Source of the DNA: Fimbriosthenelais zetlandica
Lineage: Eukaryota
DNA length: 64,000 nt
Assembly: GCA_977030845.1 (NCBI GenBank)
Contig: OZ365112.1
Location: 25,420,001 to 25,484,000 of the forward strand
Direction of reading: 5' to 3'
Position 1 is the stretch's first letter, and every line of letters begins with the position of its first letter. The notes below the pieces were generated by a model. That model did no database searches, was not told the origin of the DNA, and saw only the letters and a list, made by a program, of their open reading frames with translations. Below are positions 24,988 to 40,514 of this stretch, in pieces. Position numbers and translations under genes: made by a program.

Positions 24988-26482
24988 TGTGTACAATAGC
25001 AGGTTGAATCAATGAGGCAGGATAATCAGGTGATAGAAGGAGTACAGGTGACTGGTGATCAACAGTGTGGTCTGACTGGTATTGGTGACCTGTTAGTATT
25101 GTTCATTATGTGCAAGAATGTGTAGGTGGGCCTAGTAGTAATTGACTTCCTTGGACAAGGCCAGGACATATATGAAGTGGGTGGGGGAGGGAGGAATGAA
25201 TTGCCAAACCTTTGGTACAATGTAATGATTTAGAAAAACGTGTAAAATCTCTATTAAAATGTAAAGGATTATTTTGAACTTGGATCCTAAGTTGAACCAT
25301 AATAGTGAAGGACCATCCTCTCTTTCTTACACCACTTCGAAGTTTCCTCCTTGACCATACTTTCCCCTCGTCCTCATTCCTTTGCCCTTCCCTTCCCCCT
25401 TCCACACACCACTGTTTATCATGCTAATAATTGTACTCATTCCGTCACATTTCTGTACTATTTATTTGTTCTTTTTGCTGATATTTGGTGTTTCTTAACA
25501 CTGAATAATGTAATACCCAATACTGGCAAGTTAGTAATACTAAGTTCCTGATTTCAGGAATGGTATTTCTACTTCCATGCCAGCATTTTTGGCCCTAGTA
25601 AAGGTAGGTTTCAGACAACCTACTTAGCAAAATTCTTTGTACTTGAATTTAACCTGAATTTCCATGCCTCTGCTTTCTCAATTCTCTCTTCTTCTAGCTA
25701 TTTCTTCTCAACCATCCTTTTGTCCTGCCACCCCTTCCCCTTGACCTCCAACCCCATTTACGTTGCCCTAAAGCCCTCCCTCCTCTCGACTCCCAACCCT
25801 CTCGTCCTGAAAATTATCGTACAGGCACTAATTTTGAAAGTGCCACTGAGATCCTTAGGACAAGTCTTCCAAAAGCTGGAACTGCGCTTGCGTGCTGGCT
25901 ATGGGTGTTCATGCGGGTTTCATTTGGTGAATTACCGACCCCTACCTAGGTGTCACCCAGGTGTCACTATTGGGTTTGATGGCGGAGCACACTGCCGGAT
26001 GTATTCGTTTAAGTGAGCATTTCAGAAACCACTGAGTGAAGGTGGCTGGAAGATGAACTCGGGTGCCTGGGCACTTTGAGATCATTAGGATTTCATACTT
26101 AATATATTTCAAATGTTTCATTCATTTCATTTATTCAGTTTATTTATTTCCCGTCCTTCCTTTCCCTCCGCCCAAACCTTCCCCTTTTCTTCATTCCCTT
26201 GTCCTTCTCTCTTTCACACGCCACTATAACTCACTAATAACTGTACTCTTTCCATCTCAACTTCTCTAGTATTTTTTTTTACTTTTACTTTTGCTAATAT
26301 TTACGGTTACTTTCAGGACTGGATCTTCTGAGCCATTGGTATTGATTGGTACTGGATCTGCTGAGTCATTCGTATTGATGTCCACCAACAGCTGATATCT
26401 ACTGGAACATTTCTTCAGGCACAACAATCATCCGAGTTCCTCCTGACTATCTGGCTGAAGGTAAGACAATTTAAATTAATTA

Positions 26483-26881
26483 ATGCACCAGTCAATGTGC
26501 CCCCGAACTCCGCCACCGCGGGCTGACCTGGGGGTTCAGAAAAGTTGGGGCAGAACCACGCGGGGATTCAGACTTTTTTCGCCTTGTGAATTTTAGAATA
26601 TTTAACCATTATTAGAAACATTCAGCGACCATATAATATTATTATAAAATCACAGCATTTCCGACTTATAATTGTAAGGAAAACCTGGAATTAAGACATT
26701 AATTTTTCGACCGACCAAAAAATTCTTGGATCATAAAACAGAACCGATGACCTAGATTCCAGCCTAATGATCTCAATTTAATATTTGGATGTCAAATTTT
26801 AAGACACACATTTTTGGAGGTGGTCTGAAATGTCCTGGTCAGCCTGGGGGTTGGCGGAAGGCGGCACATTGACTGGTGCAT
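26483..26881. mobile_element. MITE family C (19-bp perfect TIR)
   Basis: ATGCACCAGTCAATGTGCC (26483-26501) / GGCACATTGACTGGTGCAT (26863-26881); no ORF; TSD unclear. Confidence 0.8.
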
Positions 26882-26990
26882 ACTAGGTATTAAGTATCTT
26901 TTGCAGGTTTTAGTCAGCTAAGCACTCTTATTAACCTCTTTTCTCTGTACGTAGGGGCCTTTTCTTTTCAGCTTGTCATTTGTGTAATTG

Positions 26991-27148
26991 CAGAATAGGT
27001 AGTTATTGTAGGATAGGTAGTTTTGTAGGATAGGTAGTTTTTGCAGAATAGGTAGTTTTTGTAGGATATGTAGTTTTTTAGGATAGGTACTTTTTGTAGG
27101 ATAGCTAGTTTTTGTAGGATAAGTAGTTTTTGTAGATAGTTAGTTTTT
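26991..27148. repeat. 18-bp minisatellite (GGATAGGTAGTTTTTGTA), about 8-9 copies
   Basis: Direct inspection. Confidence 0.9.
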
Positions 27149-27529
27149 CGTTGAGGTCTTAACATGAGAATGTAGATAGACCTCACCTGAGCCTGGTACC
27201 TCTTAATTTTGAGTTTGATCTCTTTGATTCTTGACTCTTCTATGAGGCCAAAAAATGTTTTGGAAATATTCCCTCATATTCCATTGTCTTTTGGAATATT
27301 TAGCAGTATATATATATTGCAGTATCTTTCAGGGCAGTCTATGCTAGTTGAAGCTCTCTTTATATAGCTCAATATTCCGAATTAGTTTATTATTTTATCC
27401 CGCATTTCCTCGTCCCTATTATTTTATCCCTCATTTTTTCTTGACCCCTTGAGAACACAGTTCCTCCTATTGTAGCTCCTTGATATTTTTGTCCCAGTCA
27501 AATATATTTAGCATTTTCTCACTGAGTAT

Positions 27530-28740
27530 AGACTATTTTGTCCCCTATTCTCTTACCTGATATTGTAGACATATCTTTATTTTAGACATATCTTTATTTT
27601 AGAGTGCCTTTAAACTTAGTGTTTACTGTCCTCGTTGATTCTATTTTGTGGACTCATCTGGATTTAATTCGATTAGCATTGACCTACCTTCCCTCCCATT
27701 AAGTCTTATAAATTTAGTCCAAGTTTTTTTAGATCCAATTTTATTTGTAGATTTATTATAGTACATACTACTTGATTTTCTTGTCTCTATTTGAAGTTTA
27801 ATATTCGCTTTGTTAGGGCAGTTATTTTAGTATAGTTTATTTTAGTTTCTAGTGACATTTTTCTCCCATTAAGTACAGTAGCATCTTTAGTCCATTTTTT
27901 TTGTTATAACCAGTTTTATTTTTAGATTTAATTTAGAATACTCCATCCTACTCCATGGCTATTTGATTATATATGTAGTTCAGTGCAGTCTACCCTAGCT
28001 TATCCCGAGTTAGTTATTATACAGTTCAGTATACCTCCCTTTAGTCCAAGTCTTTATAGATCCATTTTTATTTGTAGATTTAGTACAGTACATCCTACTT
28101 GATTTTCTTTACTCTAAGTTTAATATTTGCTTTGTTAGGGCAGTTATTTTAGTTCAGTTTATTTTAGTTTCTAGTGACATTTTTCACCCATAAAGTACAG
28201 GCTCGTCTTTAGTCCATTTGTTTTTATAACCCAGTTTTATTTGTAGAATGTATTGAGTATATTCCATCCGACTGAGTGTAGGTTATTTTGTCCCCTATTC
28301 TATTGCTTATATTGTAGACATATCTTTATTTTAGAGTGCCTTTTAACTTAGTGTTTTCTATCCTGGTCGATTCTATTTTGTTCACGCATCTGGATTTAAT
28401 TCGATTAGCATTGACCTCCCTTCCCTCCCATTAAGTCTTATAAATTTAGTCCAATTTTTTTTAGATCCAGTTTTATTTGTAGATTTAGTATAGTAAATCC
28501 TACTTGATTTTCTTGTCTATTTAAAGTTGTATATTTGCTTTGTTAGGATAGATATTTTAGTTTAGTTCATTTTAGTTTCTAGTGATATTTTTCTCCCAAT
28601 AAGTACAGTGTCGTCTTTAGTGCATTCTTTTGATTATGACCCGGTTTTAGTTGTAGAATAATTATTTAGAATATTCCATCCTACTCCATTTCGTATGATT
28701 TGATTAGATTTAGTTCAGGGAAGTCTAGCTACATCTCGAG
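27530..28740. repeat. Complex nested tandem repeat (750-bp higher-order period; ~330-400 bp sub-units x3)
   Basis: TTTTGTCCCCTATTCT...ATCTGGATTTAATTCGATTAGCATTGACCT...CTCCCATTAAGTCTTATAAATTTAGTCC at ~27536 and ~28286; the sub-unit TTTAGTCCAA...TTTTATTTGTAGATTTA...TTTAGTTTCTAGTGA recurs at ~27713, ~28040 and ~28445. Confidence 0.85.
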
Positions 28741-29337
28741 TAAGATTTTGTGTTAGGATAGTCAGTTCTTTACCATTTATTTTGTCCACTTTTTCTTTAG
28801 ATTCTTCTGTAGCATCAATCTAGTTTGTTTTTTTTAGTTCAGTCATTTTTTCATTGAACTTAGGATCTTATTCTGTGCTGCTTCTCTATATTAAGTTTCT
28901 CCTTTCTAATCCAACTCGGTGTATGTATTTCTTTTATATTTATTTCTGTACTTGCGCTAGCCATTCACCATAAAAATTCGCTTGTTTCCTCCCTCCTACA
29001 TCCTCCCCCATCCCTCTCTCACAGCCTGGTCAATAGTGTTCTTCCCCTCCCCCACCCAGCTTACCCCTACTCCTTCCATATGCCTGCCTCCTAAGAATTA
29101 CTTCATCCCTCATTTCCCCTCCCTCCCAACCTTCTCCCACTGCAACTCCCACTCCTCCAGTCTCCACTCTAACTCCCCCTCCCCTTGTATTATTCTCCCT
29201 CAATCAATTGATTTTTCCACACCTATAAATTTTATTTTATATCCTGTCACCCTCCCTGTCCCTACTTCCTGTCCCTAATACATAGTGTTCTCCCCTTCCT
29301 TTATATGTCTGTCTCCTAAGAAGTCCTACATCCATCC

Positions 29338-29525
29338 TCCCCCTCATCTCCCACTTCTCTCCCTTCCCCTCCTCCTCATCTCCCACTTCTCTCCCTTCCC
29401 CTCCTCCTCATCTCCCACTTCTCTCCCTTCCCCTCCTCCTCATCTCCCACTTCTCTCCCTTCCCCTCCTCCTCATCTCTTACTTCTCTCCCTTCCCCTCC
29501 TCATCTCCCACTTCTCTCCCTCATC
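29338..29525. repeat. Pyrimidine-rich ~33-36 bp tandem repeat (CCCCTCCTCCTCATCTCCCACTTCTCTCCCTT) within a larger C/T tract (28981-29560)
   Basis: About 5 copies; it accounts for the spurious ORF 29285-29599. Confidence 0.9.
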
Positions 29526-29860
29526 TCCAAAATTTCCTCCTGCCCCTCACTCAATCAATTTTGCTTGGTTTTTCATCACAGTGGCTAGCGCAGGCATAGA
29601 AATAAGTGATTTTTGCTTCTATTCAAGGTCTGTTTTATCTTGTTCAAGTTTCCTTTCCTTGTTTTAAGTCTTATCTCCATTCCTTTCCTTCTTTTAATAT
29701 TCTTTTCATTGAAGCGTAACTAATACCTTCCTTCATTTAAGTCTTATAACCTTGTTTACTAAGTCCTTTTTTAGTCTAGCTTACTTTCCCTTGTTCAAGT
29801 TTCCTTTCCTTGTTTTAAGTCTATCTCCCTTCACAGTCAGCTTTTCAAAATTATTCTCCA

Positions 29861-30323
29861 CTGTCACTGTCAACTACTGCTCTGCTGTCACCTTTCAAAA
29901 TTATTCTATCTCCACTGTCACTGTCTCTTATAGACACTGTCATAGTTGACAGTTTATTTCTATCTTCTATTTTTTTTCTATCTTCTTCTCTACTGTCAAC
30001 TAGTTGACAGTGCTTCTATTAGAAGCACTGTCAACTAGTTGACAGTAACATTTTTTTTTTATTTCCTTCTCCACTGTCAGTAGTGACTAGTCACTACTGA
30101 CAGTAGAGTTTGGAAAATCTTCTAAGTCCAAAGCTACTGTCAATGGCCAGAAGGGCCAGTTGACGTTGACACTCGAGATAGGTTCTGCCCACACGGCCAG
30201 GATTTTTCAAAAAATGACCTCCAGACTTAACCCCCTTTACAGGGATTAAGTCCAGAGGCACATCTTTTAATTTGTTCAGTCAATCTTCCCATTAATTGGG
30301 CAAGAAAGACCAAACAAATTAAA
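29861..30323. repeat. Cluster of perfect palindromes and hairpins
   Basis: 57-bp palindrome 29991-30047 (1-nt centre at 30019) containing two ACTGTCAACTAGTTGACAGT sub-palindromes; 32-bp perfect palindrome 30073-30104; further stems at 29936-29953, ~30138-30160, ~30218-30260 and ~30264-30323. Confidence 0.95.
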
Positions 30324-32606
30324 AGAGCTGTAAAAGGAATACAAACATATATACAATTTCAGTTAAACAATTTTATTTCACCATAAGAATCAAGCTGCAA
30401 CTTCTTGTTTTTCAGGTCTTCTCTGGACTTCAAACTGCTACAATGGTCCATTTTCATACATCTCAAGCACTTTACCTCTGCTGCATTGATATCCCCTGGA
30501 AAAAGAGGACATAAAACAGTCTTAGAAATCAGGATAATCATTTTGACACATCACTGCAAAAGAACATTTTTTGGTAATAAAATTGAACACACTGAAATGC
30601 CTACTTCTCTTTTCATATCAATAAGTTCGCATACTAATTTTGGCTTATTTAGGTTACAAATGAATTTACAGTGTATACAAATCTAGAGCTACATTACCTA
30701 CAGTAATTACATTTATGACTTCTTTAGGAATTTGCTAACAAACCTGTCTAGAACTACAGAGAAAAGATTTTTGGCTTATTTATTAACAAAAATTATACTG
30801 ACAAATATTGTGTTCACCTTGTCTATCTTTATACATTAGCAGTATAAAACTGACAAGATCATTTGTATGGGGAAATTAATTTTTAACCAAGAATATACTG
30901 AACATGACTTACAGAATTATACTAAAATGCCTATATCTAACTCAGTTTTAAAGGCTATTTAAAGGCTGTGTGCGAAAATGGACATTTTATCAGGAATTTA
31001 TATTTTTGGCATTTAGGAATACACTACATATAACTACCTACAATTAAGCCTATAGAGCAAATTTATAACTTTCATTAAGAGGGAATAACTTTGATGCACT
31101 ATCTGCTGTGGCCATCAACTAAAACATTTAGTTTATCCTCTATCTAGTTTTGCAAATTATTTAAAGGCCTAGATCGAGCTTATATGGATATTACTGTTAC
31201 AGAAACGGACCAAACTTTCTGACCTTATTTTAATAGCCTAGGTAGTAGGCATTTTAATTGGCTCTTTTTTTTAGAATATATCAGTTATGTTTTATAAAAT
31301 TGCTTCCTAGTTCCTAATGACTATTTTAGAGATAAATGCACTTAGAAAATCAATTAAAAATAATTAAAGACTAAACTTGCAGTCTAACTACAATTAAGCC
31401 TATAGAGCAAATAATTTATAACTTTCATTAAGAGGGAATAATTTACTTTAGAGCTTTTACCTATCTTGGTTCAATTAATTTACATTAGTAATATACTACA
31501 TATCTATTTTAAAAGCCTCTTAATTTGGTCAAAATTAAGATTTTCTGTTTTGCAAAGCCAGGTAATTTACTCTGACAATTGACACTACAATTCTCATGCC
31601 TGTAGCCATGGGTTGGGACGCGGGAGTTCTAAACCTTGCCCTTCCTACTCAACACAAACTATATAAGCCTCAAGTCTAACAACTTCACACCCAACTAAAT
31701 TATAACTCAAGTAATTCAATAAGAACGACTCAAAAATAATTTCCCAATATAAACTGCCAATACATTTACTCCCAACCAACTGATAACAAAATGTGGACAT
31801 CTCACCCTGAATCTAAATTAACCAACTAAAATAAGACCCAATATTAAGAATCCCACCCCACTAATTCTATCTACCTCCCAAATTGAATACAAAATATCAA
31901 CCTGTACCTCATCTTGACTAAATAAACCAACCCAACTCATTACTATTTACGACCCCAACTAAATAGAAATCCCACCTATATTAATTTACTAAACTAAACT
32001 CATTCTACCCGCCTTCCAAAATATGTATATCCTCAAATAAGCATTAACCAGCACCCCAACCAGATCTTAAAGACGCTACCCCTATTCCTAATTAGGACCA
32101 TACTAATGAAATACAAATGAACCTTGAACTCAAATCGGATCTAATTTATTAAAAAGCCTCCGCTGGGAATAAATTTATGACCCCACATAATTATCAAGAA
32201 TGAACTAGCTGGACTAATCAAATGAACCCTCCCTAATAGACTAATTACAAATTAAGACCCTAAACTAATTACCAAATAAATCCCCACCCCACCCCACCCC
32301 CACGGGGCAACACGTGGCTACAGGCATGATAACTGAACATAGAAAAAAAATCACGAAATGCTTGAGACAAGACTTGAGCTTCGGACTGACTGATTCCCTT
32401 TGGGAAATAGATTTTAACTATGGCCGCCAACGAAAATGCCATAGATTGTGGGTTCAAATGACAATTACAAATATTACCCGACCAATAGGGCGTACTTTTT
32501 CCCCAGTTTGTTAAAAACAACCAATGCTCAATTGTGAACGTGTGGGTCCGAAAACTAATCAACCAATGCTCAAGTCTTGCATTCAAGTAAAGAGGTAAAG
32601 CTTAGA

Positions 32607-33035: not shown

Positions 33036-33669
33036 ACCAGGAATAAAATAACTTACTTTTTGTCAGTATTTACTGGACGAATGAAGGGTGGGTGAATGCC
33101 TGGTGCCCCTGAACGTATGGTCGTCTCGGTATGAAAAGACAAAAAGGGAAAGAACATTAAGTATACGCATGAATACAAAAATAACATAACGTTAACCCAA
33201 AATAGTCTCGTATTACAGTAATGCGGCCAGCACAAAAGCTGAATAGTTCATTAAATTGTGCTGTGATAAATTAAAATGGCCACCATATTACCTTCACAAA
33301 TTGTACACAATATATCATAAATTTAAATACAGGATAAACAAAGTAAACTATTGTAAAATCCCATTTGCCATTCTCCACAAGTCTAGCATGGACATAATTA
33401 ATAAGTAAATTGAAGAAAACAACTAAGGAATTTAGATAACTAAGTCATACAGGCCGAGAATAAGAGTCCAAAAACTAAAGTAAAATACAATAAAAAGTTG
33501 AAGGTTTAAATCCAGGTGGAGAAAGGTGGCAGGGACTATACAATACAATACAATATAGAATAAATTCCTATGAATGAACACTCACCTCACACAACTGTCT
33601 CCTTTGCTGTCCAGAACGAAAAAGGCTGATGTGTTGAGATTCTTGGTCGTTGTTCCAGACTTCCTCAGA

Positions 33670-33840
33670 TCAGCCTTCTCATTGGCCGAGAGAGGTGTCA
33701 CATGGTGATGCAAAACCGCAGCAGTGCTTAGCAACCTCGGTTGGTGAGTGAGAGATTGTAGTCGCCTTTTCATTGGCCCTGAGAGTCGTCTCACTACCAA
33801 GTAACCAGAGGTTTTGTTAGGCGCCTGCCCATTGGTTGTT
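33670..33840 (-). promoter_or_regulatory. Candidate promoter: three CCAAT boxes on the - strand and RFX-like half sites
   Basis: ATTGG at 33681, 33772 and 33831 (the first two within a ~28-bp direct repeat); CTTAGCAAC and CTACCAAGTAAC; strong - strand donor GAG|GTGAGT at 33586. Confidence 0.4.
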
Positions 33841-39052: not shown

Positions 39053-40514
39053 ATGAGGCATCTTCGGTTGATGCTCCTGGGCTTGACAGCGTTCATTGGT
39101 AAGTTTCTTCTTCGTTTCTAGACATGATTCAGAAATTGTATAGTTTTGTTTGTAACTGTAACAAATACAAATACTGTAACAAATACATCTACAGAAAAGA
39201 CAAGTTGAAATTGTCATAATAAACAAAATCATAGGCTCCCTCCCTTAGAAGCGCCTTCTCATTGATTATTGTGTCATCATGGCCCATTCTCATAATACAC
39301 CATGTTCCCTTCTATTTAATATTTCTATCTTTTCCAGTGAAGAGTAGTGCCTTGAAATGCTACACATGCAGCTACCAAATCTCTGGCACAGACAGGGACA
39401 AAGAATGTGTTGACAAACCATGGAATGTGACACAAGGACAGAAGGAAATTAACTGTCCCTATCCTTACTGTGTGGTGTTTAGACAAGCTACAAGACGTAA
39501 GTCATTTACTGATTACTTTAGATTTTCAGAATTAGGAACTTTGGTAGATTGAATCACAAGGACAGTTAGCTTCACTTCACCTAAACCCCAATTGACATGG
39601 ATCAATCCAGCTGGCTCCAGATTATTTTCCCAGTAGGATTAGACTGTAATACTGTCTGTTATTGTACTTCACAGGTCTTTATACCATACTGACCTTTACT
39701 GAGATTGAATGCGGTAAGACGATTGCTTAACATTTTCGGGACGGGGCGGGCCTGAGATCTAACAGACATCTAGCCCCCCCCCCCCACCCACCCCTAGTAA
39801 CAGAATCCTGCATCTGCCCCTGCTTGATCATACAATGTATATGATTACAACCATTTCGGACGTTATTTTCTCCTTTCAGTGACAAATATATTCATTACAT
39901 TTGTCAATAACTTTACATAAATAATTACAGATCAGAACAAAATCCAGTCGTTCCACAGAGGCTGTGAAATGAAGGGCCGAGGTAACACATGTGTTCATGA
40001 CAGTTACTACTCTACATGTTCCTACACGTGTAACACCGACCTGTGTAACGGTGGAGATGGCGTACCCGTGGCTAGTGAGGTGGGACAAGATGTCATCAGT
40101 ACACCAAGACATGTTCCTGTACAACCTCACAGACCCAAACCATCAAGACCTACAGGTAAACCTGGCAGGAACAGGTACGATTACAATCCACACAAGTATG
40201 ACCACAGTCAACAGTACAATCGCAACGCCAAATACGATGATGCGAAACTGGCGAATGAAAATCACAAAATAAATGCTGGCACTGAGAACATGGATGGTGG
40301 CATGGGTCGCGGAGGAAAATCGGAGAAAAAGGAGAAAGGAAAGGACAGAGGAGAGAAGGGGAAGAATGAAAGAAGGAAAGGCGATTGTATGCACCCTTAT
40401 GCTTGTGATCAAAGCAAATATAGGCCTGGAAACAGTGCAGCCTCTTTAAATTTCCAATTCACAGTCTGTCTCCAAAGTATTTTCCTTTCTCTATTTGTCT
40501 ACTTTCAAAAATAA
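39053..40514 (+). CDS. Ly6/uPAR (LU, three-finger) domain protein with long hydrophilic stalk and GPI-signal-like tail, 262 aa
   Basis: Exons 39053-39098 (MRHLRLMLLGLTAFI), 39338-39496 (VKSSALKCYTC...C...C...C) and 39931-40514 (RGC...C...CSYTCNTDLCN, then the stalk and a hydrophobic C-terminus) join in frame (789 nt). A candidate non-coding first exon ends at 38868 (CAG|GTGAGA). Confidence 0.88.

Follow-up and report, generated by a model that had tools for sequence, protein, structure and literature searches.

An array of hexamers and nested palindromes located near the middle of the 64-kb stretch of DNA analysed here (the window) is real, statistically striking and unique within the window, and any function that it might have is putative. 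The explanation that we favor, and to which we give about an even chance of being correct, is that the array would be a young, single-copy and lineage-specific minisatellite whose inverted-repeat cores have been perfected and extended by replication template switching. The organization of the array in units, the perfection of its palindromes and their uniqueness in the window, and the absence of the hallmarks of transposons and viruses can be read directly from the DNA and constitute the basis of this proposal.

Anatomy of the array and its genomic setting

The first evidence of an unusual composition comes from the hexamer CTGTCA and its complement TGACAG, which appear 13 times within positions 29861-30142. 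An exact pattern search returned nine copies on the plus strand and four on the minus strand, the same counts that had been given in the original prediction. The same search retrieved 42 occurrences in the whole 64-kb window, for which the expectation is 32.8 +/- 5.4, and the 29 copies found in the other 63.7 kb are at chance level. When all hexamers were compared, CTGTCA/TGACAG formed the densest non-microsatellite cluster of the window, and only microsatellite words and C-runs reached a higher count per 290-bp span. At the level of symmetry, the most prominent element is a 57-bp perfect palindrome (29991-30047) that the repeat finder resolves into two 28-nt arms (29991-30018 and 30020-30047), 100% complementary and with 1 nt between them. 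It is made of two 20-bp palindromes, ACTGTCAACTAGTTGACAGT, flanking GCTTCTA-T-TAGAAGC, and this 20-mer occurs exactly twice in the window when 0.01 occurrences are expected. A second perfect palindrome of 32 bp (30073-30104; 16+16 nt with a spacer of 0 in the palindrome scan) grows to 20+20 nt at 95% (arms 30069-30088 and 30089-30108), also with no spacer. Both palindromes had been predicted with these same limits, along with at least four more hairpins. At least five more were indeed found up to 30326, at 29936-29953, 30108-30133, 30136-30166, 30218-30262 and 30263-30326. ACTAGT is central in three palindromes and TAGT in a fourth, all of them inside tandem units. According to a scan of the whole 64-kb window, perfect palindromes with arms of at least 10 nt are restricted to the array, and the five with 9-nt arms found elsewhere are about the chance level estimated from shuffled sequence. 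Folded as single-stranded DNA, positions 29840-30340 reach -100.5 kcal/mol, compared to -42.5 +/- 4.3 for shuffled versions (z = -13.4). The array had also been placed at a skew switch, and the AT skew does turn at about 30.0 kb, going from -0.38 (29500-29999) to -0.01 (30000-30499) and becoming positive from 31.5 kb rightwards.

Hexamers and palindromes are not independent features of this region but parts of one repeat structure. The array consists of five head-to-tail units of 50-93 bp that can be aligned in one register (alignment A1) with a mean column identity of 61%. This unit structure rests on a manual alignment of short, T-rich sequences, and Tandem Repeats Finder made no call there because the divergence among the units and their variation in length are too large; the direct sub-repeats D5, D6 and D8, exact or near-exact in the output of the repeat finder, back the tandem units. 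Each unit runs from a T-rich spacer through TCTCC or TCTCT into a core of the form ACTGTCA(A)...(T)TGACAGT, whose centre varies from unit to unit while its symmetry stays. Common to the units are the spacer, a TCTCCACTGTCA head and a AGTTGACAGT tail; the core starts with ACTGTCA(A) and ends in U2-U5 with (T)TGACAGT, but with TGACGT in U5. Read in the orientation of the motif, ACTGTCA is present at 12 of the 13 sites and ACTGTCAA at seven, with TCTCC or TCTCT preceding most of them. The count of 13 hexamers is explained because each unit core holds two to four.

From left to right, the array is preceded by a decayed unit, U0 (29820-29842), recognized in the sequence and in the list of one-mismatch motifs as TCTCCC...CACAGTCA, with 1 mismatch to CACTGTCA. 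U1 (29843-29892) carries the spacer TTTCAAAATTATTCT followed by CCACTGTCACTGTCAACTACTG...CTGTCACC and contains three direct copies of CTGTCA without the inverted arm (D5, D8, A1). U2 (29893-29953) has the same spacer, 100% identical to that of U1, then the head TCTCCACTGTCACTGTC, and terminates in the small palindrome ACTGTCA-TAGT-TGACAGT (29936-29953). The third CTGTCA of both U1 and U2 is retained although 11-13 bases around it are unrelated in alignment A1. In U3 (29954-30047) a T-rich spacer leads to the 57-bp palindrome (inverted repeat I1), and in U4 (about 30047-30108) another one leads to the 32-bp palindrome, with its 95% extension over 30069-30108 (D6, I3); a 30-mer within these two spacers shows 87% identity between U3 and U4. 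Finally, U5 (30105-30166) is composed of a TTTGGA/TCCAAA hairpin (30108-30133) and an imperfect palindrome, ACTGTCAA-TGGCC-AGAAG-GGCCA-GTTGACGT (30136-30166). Every core centre from U2 to U5 is itself symmetric: TAGT in U2, ACTAGT twice with GCTTCTA-T-TAGAAGC between in U3, GTAGTGACTAGTCACTAC in U4 and TGGCC-AGAAG-GGCCA in U5.

The array constitutes the right-hand end of a tandem-repeat-rich block of about 3 kb (26988-29825) that is T/C-rich on the plus strand, with a GC skew down to -0.83 and an AT skew of about -0.4 on that strand. The contents of the block are mutually unrelated and include an 18-mer repeated 8.7 times (26995-27148), a duplication of ~730 bp (27.5-28.7 kb), a polypyrimidine 32-mer repeated 5.9 times (29336-29521) and a 151-bp duplication. 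A TTAAGTC motif recurs along the block and reaches the hairpin at 30228-30252. At the left edge of the block sits a small G+C-rich foldback (26500-26870) with inverted arms of about 30 nt, of the GGTCAGCC...GGCGGA type, separated by about 310 bp. On the other side of the array, a MITE-like element of about 750 bp (31588-32335) is delimited on both sides by inverted repeats of 40 nt with 78% complementarity (CATGCCTGTAGCCA...). Other repeats of the window are a long CCAT/CATC microsatellite-like array at 22131-22394, with CACTCATCTGT units interspersed, and a tRNA-like fragment at 24915-24990 (GGAATTGAACCCCGGTCTCC...) that is probably a decayed tRNA-derived repeat; an ARAGORN scan of the window called no tRNA.

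Regarding the genes, a 904-aa open reading frame on the minus strand (42.1-44.9 kb) was assigned to Gli as its last exon; a brachiopod, molluscs and annelids provide its best named relatives. The array is thus located about 12 kb downstream of this developmental regulator. Between the two, a pair of plus-strand candidate exons (39262-40130) displays by eye the three-finger cysteine pattern of Ly6/uPAR proteins (CYTC...C...CPYPYC, then ...CNTDLCNGG). Further to the left, large plus-strand exons at 16195-19900 encode a low-complexity protein rich in serine, arginine and glutamate, for which no Pfam domain was detected and whose single relative in the protein collection is distant (38% identity); a Pfam search on the large open reading frames of the window gave no domains. 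Closer to the array, a plus-strand gene is represented by short exons at about 23.1-26.46 kb, the last visible one ending in a splice donor. On this strand AATAAA is absent from 26.4 to 30.58 kb and the first ATTAAA is found at 30318. On the minus strand, CCAAT boxes lie at 33.7-33.9 kb, and inspection by eye pointed to three candidate exons (about 33586-33700, 33064-33132 and 30362-30487) that have GT/AG borders and lack a convincing open reading frame; the last one ends near 30360, by an AATAAA (30372). Convergent transcription into the array is plausible from the skew and the poly(A) signals.

A proposed origin by tandem duplication and template switching

The mechanism that we propose for the formation of the array combines two processes. 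Tandem duplication would have multiplied the unit up to five copies, or six with the decayed U0, in non-coding DNA at the right end of the pyrimidine-rich block. Within the units, the nascent strand would fold back and copy its own complement, a template switch of the DNA polymerase by which the arms would be repeatedly perfected and lengthened. A first round of this process would give rise to the spacer-less 20-bp and 32-bp palindromes, and the 57-bp palindrome, itself composed of palindromes, would come from a second round. The 13 CTGTCA/TGACAG hexamers would then be a by-product of unit duplication. It has been described that template switching makes perfect hairpins in a single event (PMC10710096), and also that imperfect inverted repeats, those at transcription-factor sites among them, become homogenised and expanded through it (PMC13100816).

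Traces of such copying are found when the palindromes are compared with U1. In this non-palindromic unit ACTGTCAACTA is followed by CTGCTC, whereas in the 20-bp palindrome it is followed by the exact reverse complement of its own preceding bases. This pattern is the one expected if an inverted copy of local sequence had been made, and not from an insertion. Likewise, GTCA(A)CTACTG is present in both arms of U4 while U1 has the direct form, and the U4 palindrome runs into the flank of its own unit, with CTCCA on the left and TAGAG on the right. The comparison uses the paralogous U1 only, the nearest relatives being 38-53% identical at the protein level. Since the spacers are of 0 or 1 nt and the central bases would be unpairable in a loop, the symmetry seems to have been made by DNA copying and not by selection of a fold.

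The age of the arms points in the same direction. They are perfect, yet between U3 and U4 the adjoining spacers differ by 13%. By our own calculation, arms dating from the U3/U4 duplication would be free of mismatches with a probability of about 0.02 in the case of the 28-nt arms and 0.11 in that of the 16-nt arms. Perfect arms beside diverged spacers therefore indicate that the arms are younger than the duplication or under homogenisation.

From these features we infer that template switching has been the generating process and that the array lacks a selected function. Two aspects of the array stand against this reading. First, the symmetric cores with different centres that four of the five units retain could equally be the result of selection, either for a hairpin or by a protein that binds as a dimer. 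Second, the retention of CTGTCA in U1 and U2 amid unrelated flanks hints at conservation of the motif itself. Foldback template switching had already been mentioned in passing in the original prediction, and it is the process that best fits the anatomy of the array, with the proviso that individual events cannot be polarised without an outgroup.

Other explanations for the array

Subterminal regions of the Ac/Ds and En/Spm transposons contain a short transposase-binding motif in both orientations, including tail-to-tail dimers. It is conceivable, although unlikely, that the array is a motif-dense subterminal end of a DNA transposon of this sort, or a tiny foldback or MITE-like cluster with ACTGTCAA ends and variable interiors. 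The 13 repetitions of a 7-8-bp motif over 290 bp, in both orientations and with variable spacers, are what would be seen in such an end, and the four palindromes combine constant outer arms with varying inner content. In addition, the adjoining internal tandem repeats resemble the interior of some non-autonomous elements, and other MITE- or inverted-repeat-like elements exist in the window, such as the one at 31588-32335. Nevertheless, a second motif cluster or an inverted partner is absent within the 64 kb. A blastn search with a word size of 7 revealed no second copy of the array in the window, and no large degenerate palindrome is centred on it. A 10-nt inverted match (GGGCAGAACC) linking 26.5 kb with 30.18 kb was considered as a possible transposon end and discarded, being at chance level. 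Moreover, the palindromes have no target-site duplication, the flanking A...T merely continuing the palindrome, and no transposase open reading frame is found nearby, the large ones having no Pfam domain and belonging to host genes.

A somewhat more doubtful alternative concerns the TALE homeodomain proteins Meis, Pknox and TGIF. The array would be in this case a homotypic cluster of their sites with a role near Gli as enhancer, silencer or boundary, and palindrome formation would be the way in which new sites arose. The TGACAG core is present at all 13 sites and its extended form TTGACAG (CTGTCAA) at seven of the 13, the hexamer is retained where its flanks are not, and the array lies about 12 kb downstream of Gli. 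The same genome presumably has excesses of TGACAG or ATTGACAG close to Hox1 and teashirt as well. The arrangement of the sites nonetheless differs from that of the canonical dimer site. The DNA in the crystal structure of TGIF1 is ATTGACAGCTGTCAAT, in which TTGACAG stands head-to-head with CTGTCAA (PMC6158717). This canonical head-to-head arrangement, TGACAGCTGTCA, is not formed by any pair of sites in the array, where TGACAG is never directly followed by CTGTCA. Instead, the half-sites face outwards (CTGTCA...TGACAG), and the intervals of 4, 6, 6 and 18 bp that separate them fit no single dimer geometry, although monomers could bind each putative half-site. Hence, of the TALE array that had been suggested, the match of the hexamers and of the seven extended forms to a half-site holds, and the dimer arrangement and spacing turn out to be non-canonical. 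Besides, the number of sites follows from unit duplication. As regards conservation, the nearest relative of the Gli last exon in the protein collection is 53% identical, and the window's own open reading frame is itself absent from the records. Two Gli loci of distant relatives, taken from ENA assemblies, show no non-coding similarity to the window, and over the 10 kb that follow the last Gli exon they contain no CTGTCA cluster, which at 51% amino-acid identity is a weak test.

The two rightmost hairpins have led us to contemplate a role at the RNA level. H1 (30263-30326; repeat I2) and H2 (30218-30262) are older, imperfect hairpins listed on the minus strand. H1 has 28-nt arms (30263-30290 and 30299-30326) that are 82% complementary; it folds with about 29 pairs and a 5-nt loop, reaching -34.1 kcal/mol as minus-strand RNA and -27.7 as plus-strand RNA. 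For H2, the minus-strand RNA forms 22 pairs, including 5 G.U, at -31.6 kcal/mol, and the plus-strand RNA 16 pairs at -18.8. Of the transitions within the two stems, seven are G.U-compatible when read on the minus strand and one when read on the plus strand (one-sided binomial test, p about 0.035, 8 sites), and the same tandem CA/TG change of an arm, giving tandem G.U pairs, is found in both hairpins. A T6 run (30205-30210) comes after H1 and H2 on the minus strand. These observations give a weak hint that RNA structure on this strand matters, and H1 and H2 may correspond either to a small structured RNA or to two old members of the palindrome series.

Extended to the whole array, this idea would turn it into a cluster of hairpin RNAs (proto-miRNAs, hpRNAs, or a structure for termination or processing) carried by a spliced, apparently non-coding minus-strand transcript starting near 33.7-33.9 kb, the perfect palindromes being the newest hairpins, a scenario that we judge improbable. 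In its favor, H1 and H2 fold far better as minus-strand RNA and show the G.U asymmetry just described, candidate exons with GT/AG borders and no open reading frame as well as the CCAAT boxes at 33.7-33.9 kb were recognized by eye, and new miRNA hairpins are documented to arise by template switching (PMC10710096). However, Rfam was empty at gathering score, and the sub-threshold miRNA matches, of 18-31 bits when the cut-offs are 66-104 (the best one, 30.8 bits against a cut-off of 100), reflect a generic similarity between hairpins. The Microprocessor favors stems of about 35 bp with loops of at least 10 nt (PMC10710096), a geometry poorly matched by the perfect palindromes, whose loops span 0-1 nt and whose stems measure 10-28 bp. 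Moreover, the first AATAAA on the minus strand (30372) lies upstream of all the hairpins, and the G.U asymmetry is based on 8 sites. The structured RNA that had been envisaged for this region thus retains weak support, confined to its two rightmost imperfect hairpins. A more speculative version, to which we give still less credit, would make the array a birthplace of hairpin-RNA genes, in which a tandem repeat located 3' in a non-coding transcript of the minus strand would generate one perfect hairpin after another by serial template switching, and the two oldest ones (30218-30326) would already be maintained as RNA, in line with their strand-specific G.U pairs. If this were true, the perfect palindromes would produce the same hairpins from either of the two convergent transcripts.

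The remaining possibilities, a replication origin, a viral hr-like element or an assembly artefact, are highly improbable. Baculovirus hr regions are repeated palindromes with a restriction-site core set in direct repeats, and the palindromes of the array do have a constant restriction-like core of 6 bp (ACTAGT) in direct repeats, the resemblance on which an origin- or hr-like element had been proposed. This proposal is not sustained by the data, given the host-gene context that includes Gli, the lack of a second copy in the window and the empty searches of viral, phage and plasmid sequences: an exact scan of IMG/VR with the 20-mer and a BLASTN comparison against plasmid and phage collections both yielded no match. 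As there is no plasmid or phage match, vector contamination is argued against as well, despite the presence of SpeI, SfiI and XhoI sites. Four metagenome contigs matching the 20-mer were rejected as unrelated prokaryotic palindromes, terminator- or operator-like or located in high-GC intergenic DNA, and a full-text literature search for the palindrome sequence found no paper. To our knowledge, metazoan origins are not defined by sequence of this kind. Foldback chimeras are known in long-read data, but such read chimeras give kilobase-scale inversions and not palindromes of 20-57 bp in diverged tandem units, and an assembly artefact is unlikely.

Meaning of the array and comparison with known systems

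If tandem duplication followed by template switching is the correct explanation, nested perfect palindromes can be built by these two processes within a few hundred bases, with dense consensus half-sites for transcription factors and stable hairpins as side products. Such half-sites and hairpins are thought to be the raw material for enhancers, dimer sites and new small-RNA genes. It would also be a caution for motif-based annotation, as a 13-site "TALE array" would have emerged from repeat structure alone. The array would acquire greater weight if it were bound by proteins, a source of small RNAs, or polymorphic or fragile in the population.

Several known systems share part of this organization. 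With baculovirus hr regions the array has in common, at the level of architecture only, repeated perfect or imperfect palindromes with a fixed 6-bp restriction-site core in direct repeats; unlike them, it is located in an animal chromosome, as a single copy in the window, with no viral genes and no similarity in the viral collections searched. TALE sites (TGIF/MEIS/PKNOX) have the same TGACAG core, and TTGACAG is identical to each canonical TGIF1 half (PMC6158717), whereas the halves that in the canonical dimer site are head-to-head (TGACAG|CTGTCA) are everted and 4-18 bp apart in the array. Like the subterminal repeats of Ac/Ds and En/Spm-CACTA elements, the array concentrates a short direct and inverted motif within about 300 bp; in contrast to these elements, neither a terminal inverted repeat nor a target-site duplication was found for it, and the 64-kb window contains no second end, no transposase and no other copy.

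The closest resemblances are to the two systems that we combine in the favored explanation. As in minisatellites, head-to-tail units of variable length share a common frame at a single, non-coding locus inside a larger repeat-rich block, with the difference that here the unit core is itself palindromic. As in the inverted repeats generated by template switching, the array presents perfect and (nearly) spacer-less short palindromes, apparent inverted copies of adjacent sequence, perfect arms amid diverged DNA and nested rounds of palindromes. It departs from the described cases in containing four or five such putative events in consecutive tandem units. The array is best regarded as a new, lineage-specific case of processes already known, namely tandem duplication and the expansion of inverted repeats by template switching.
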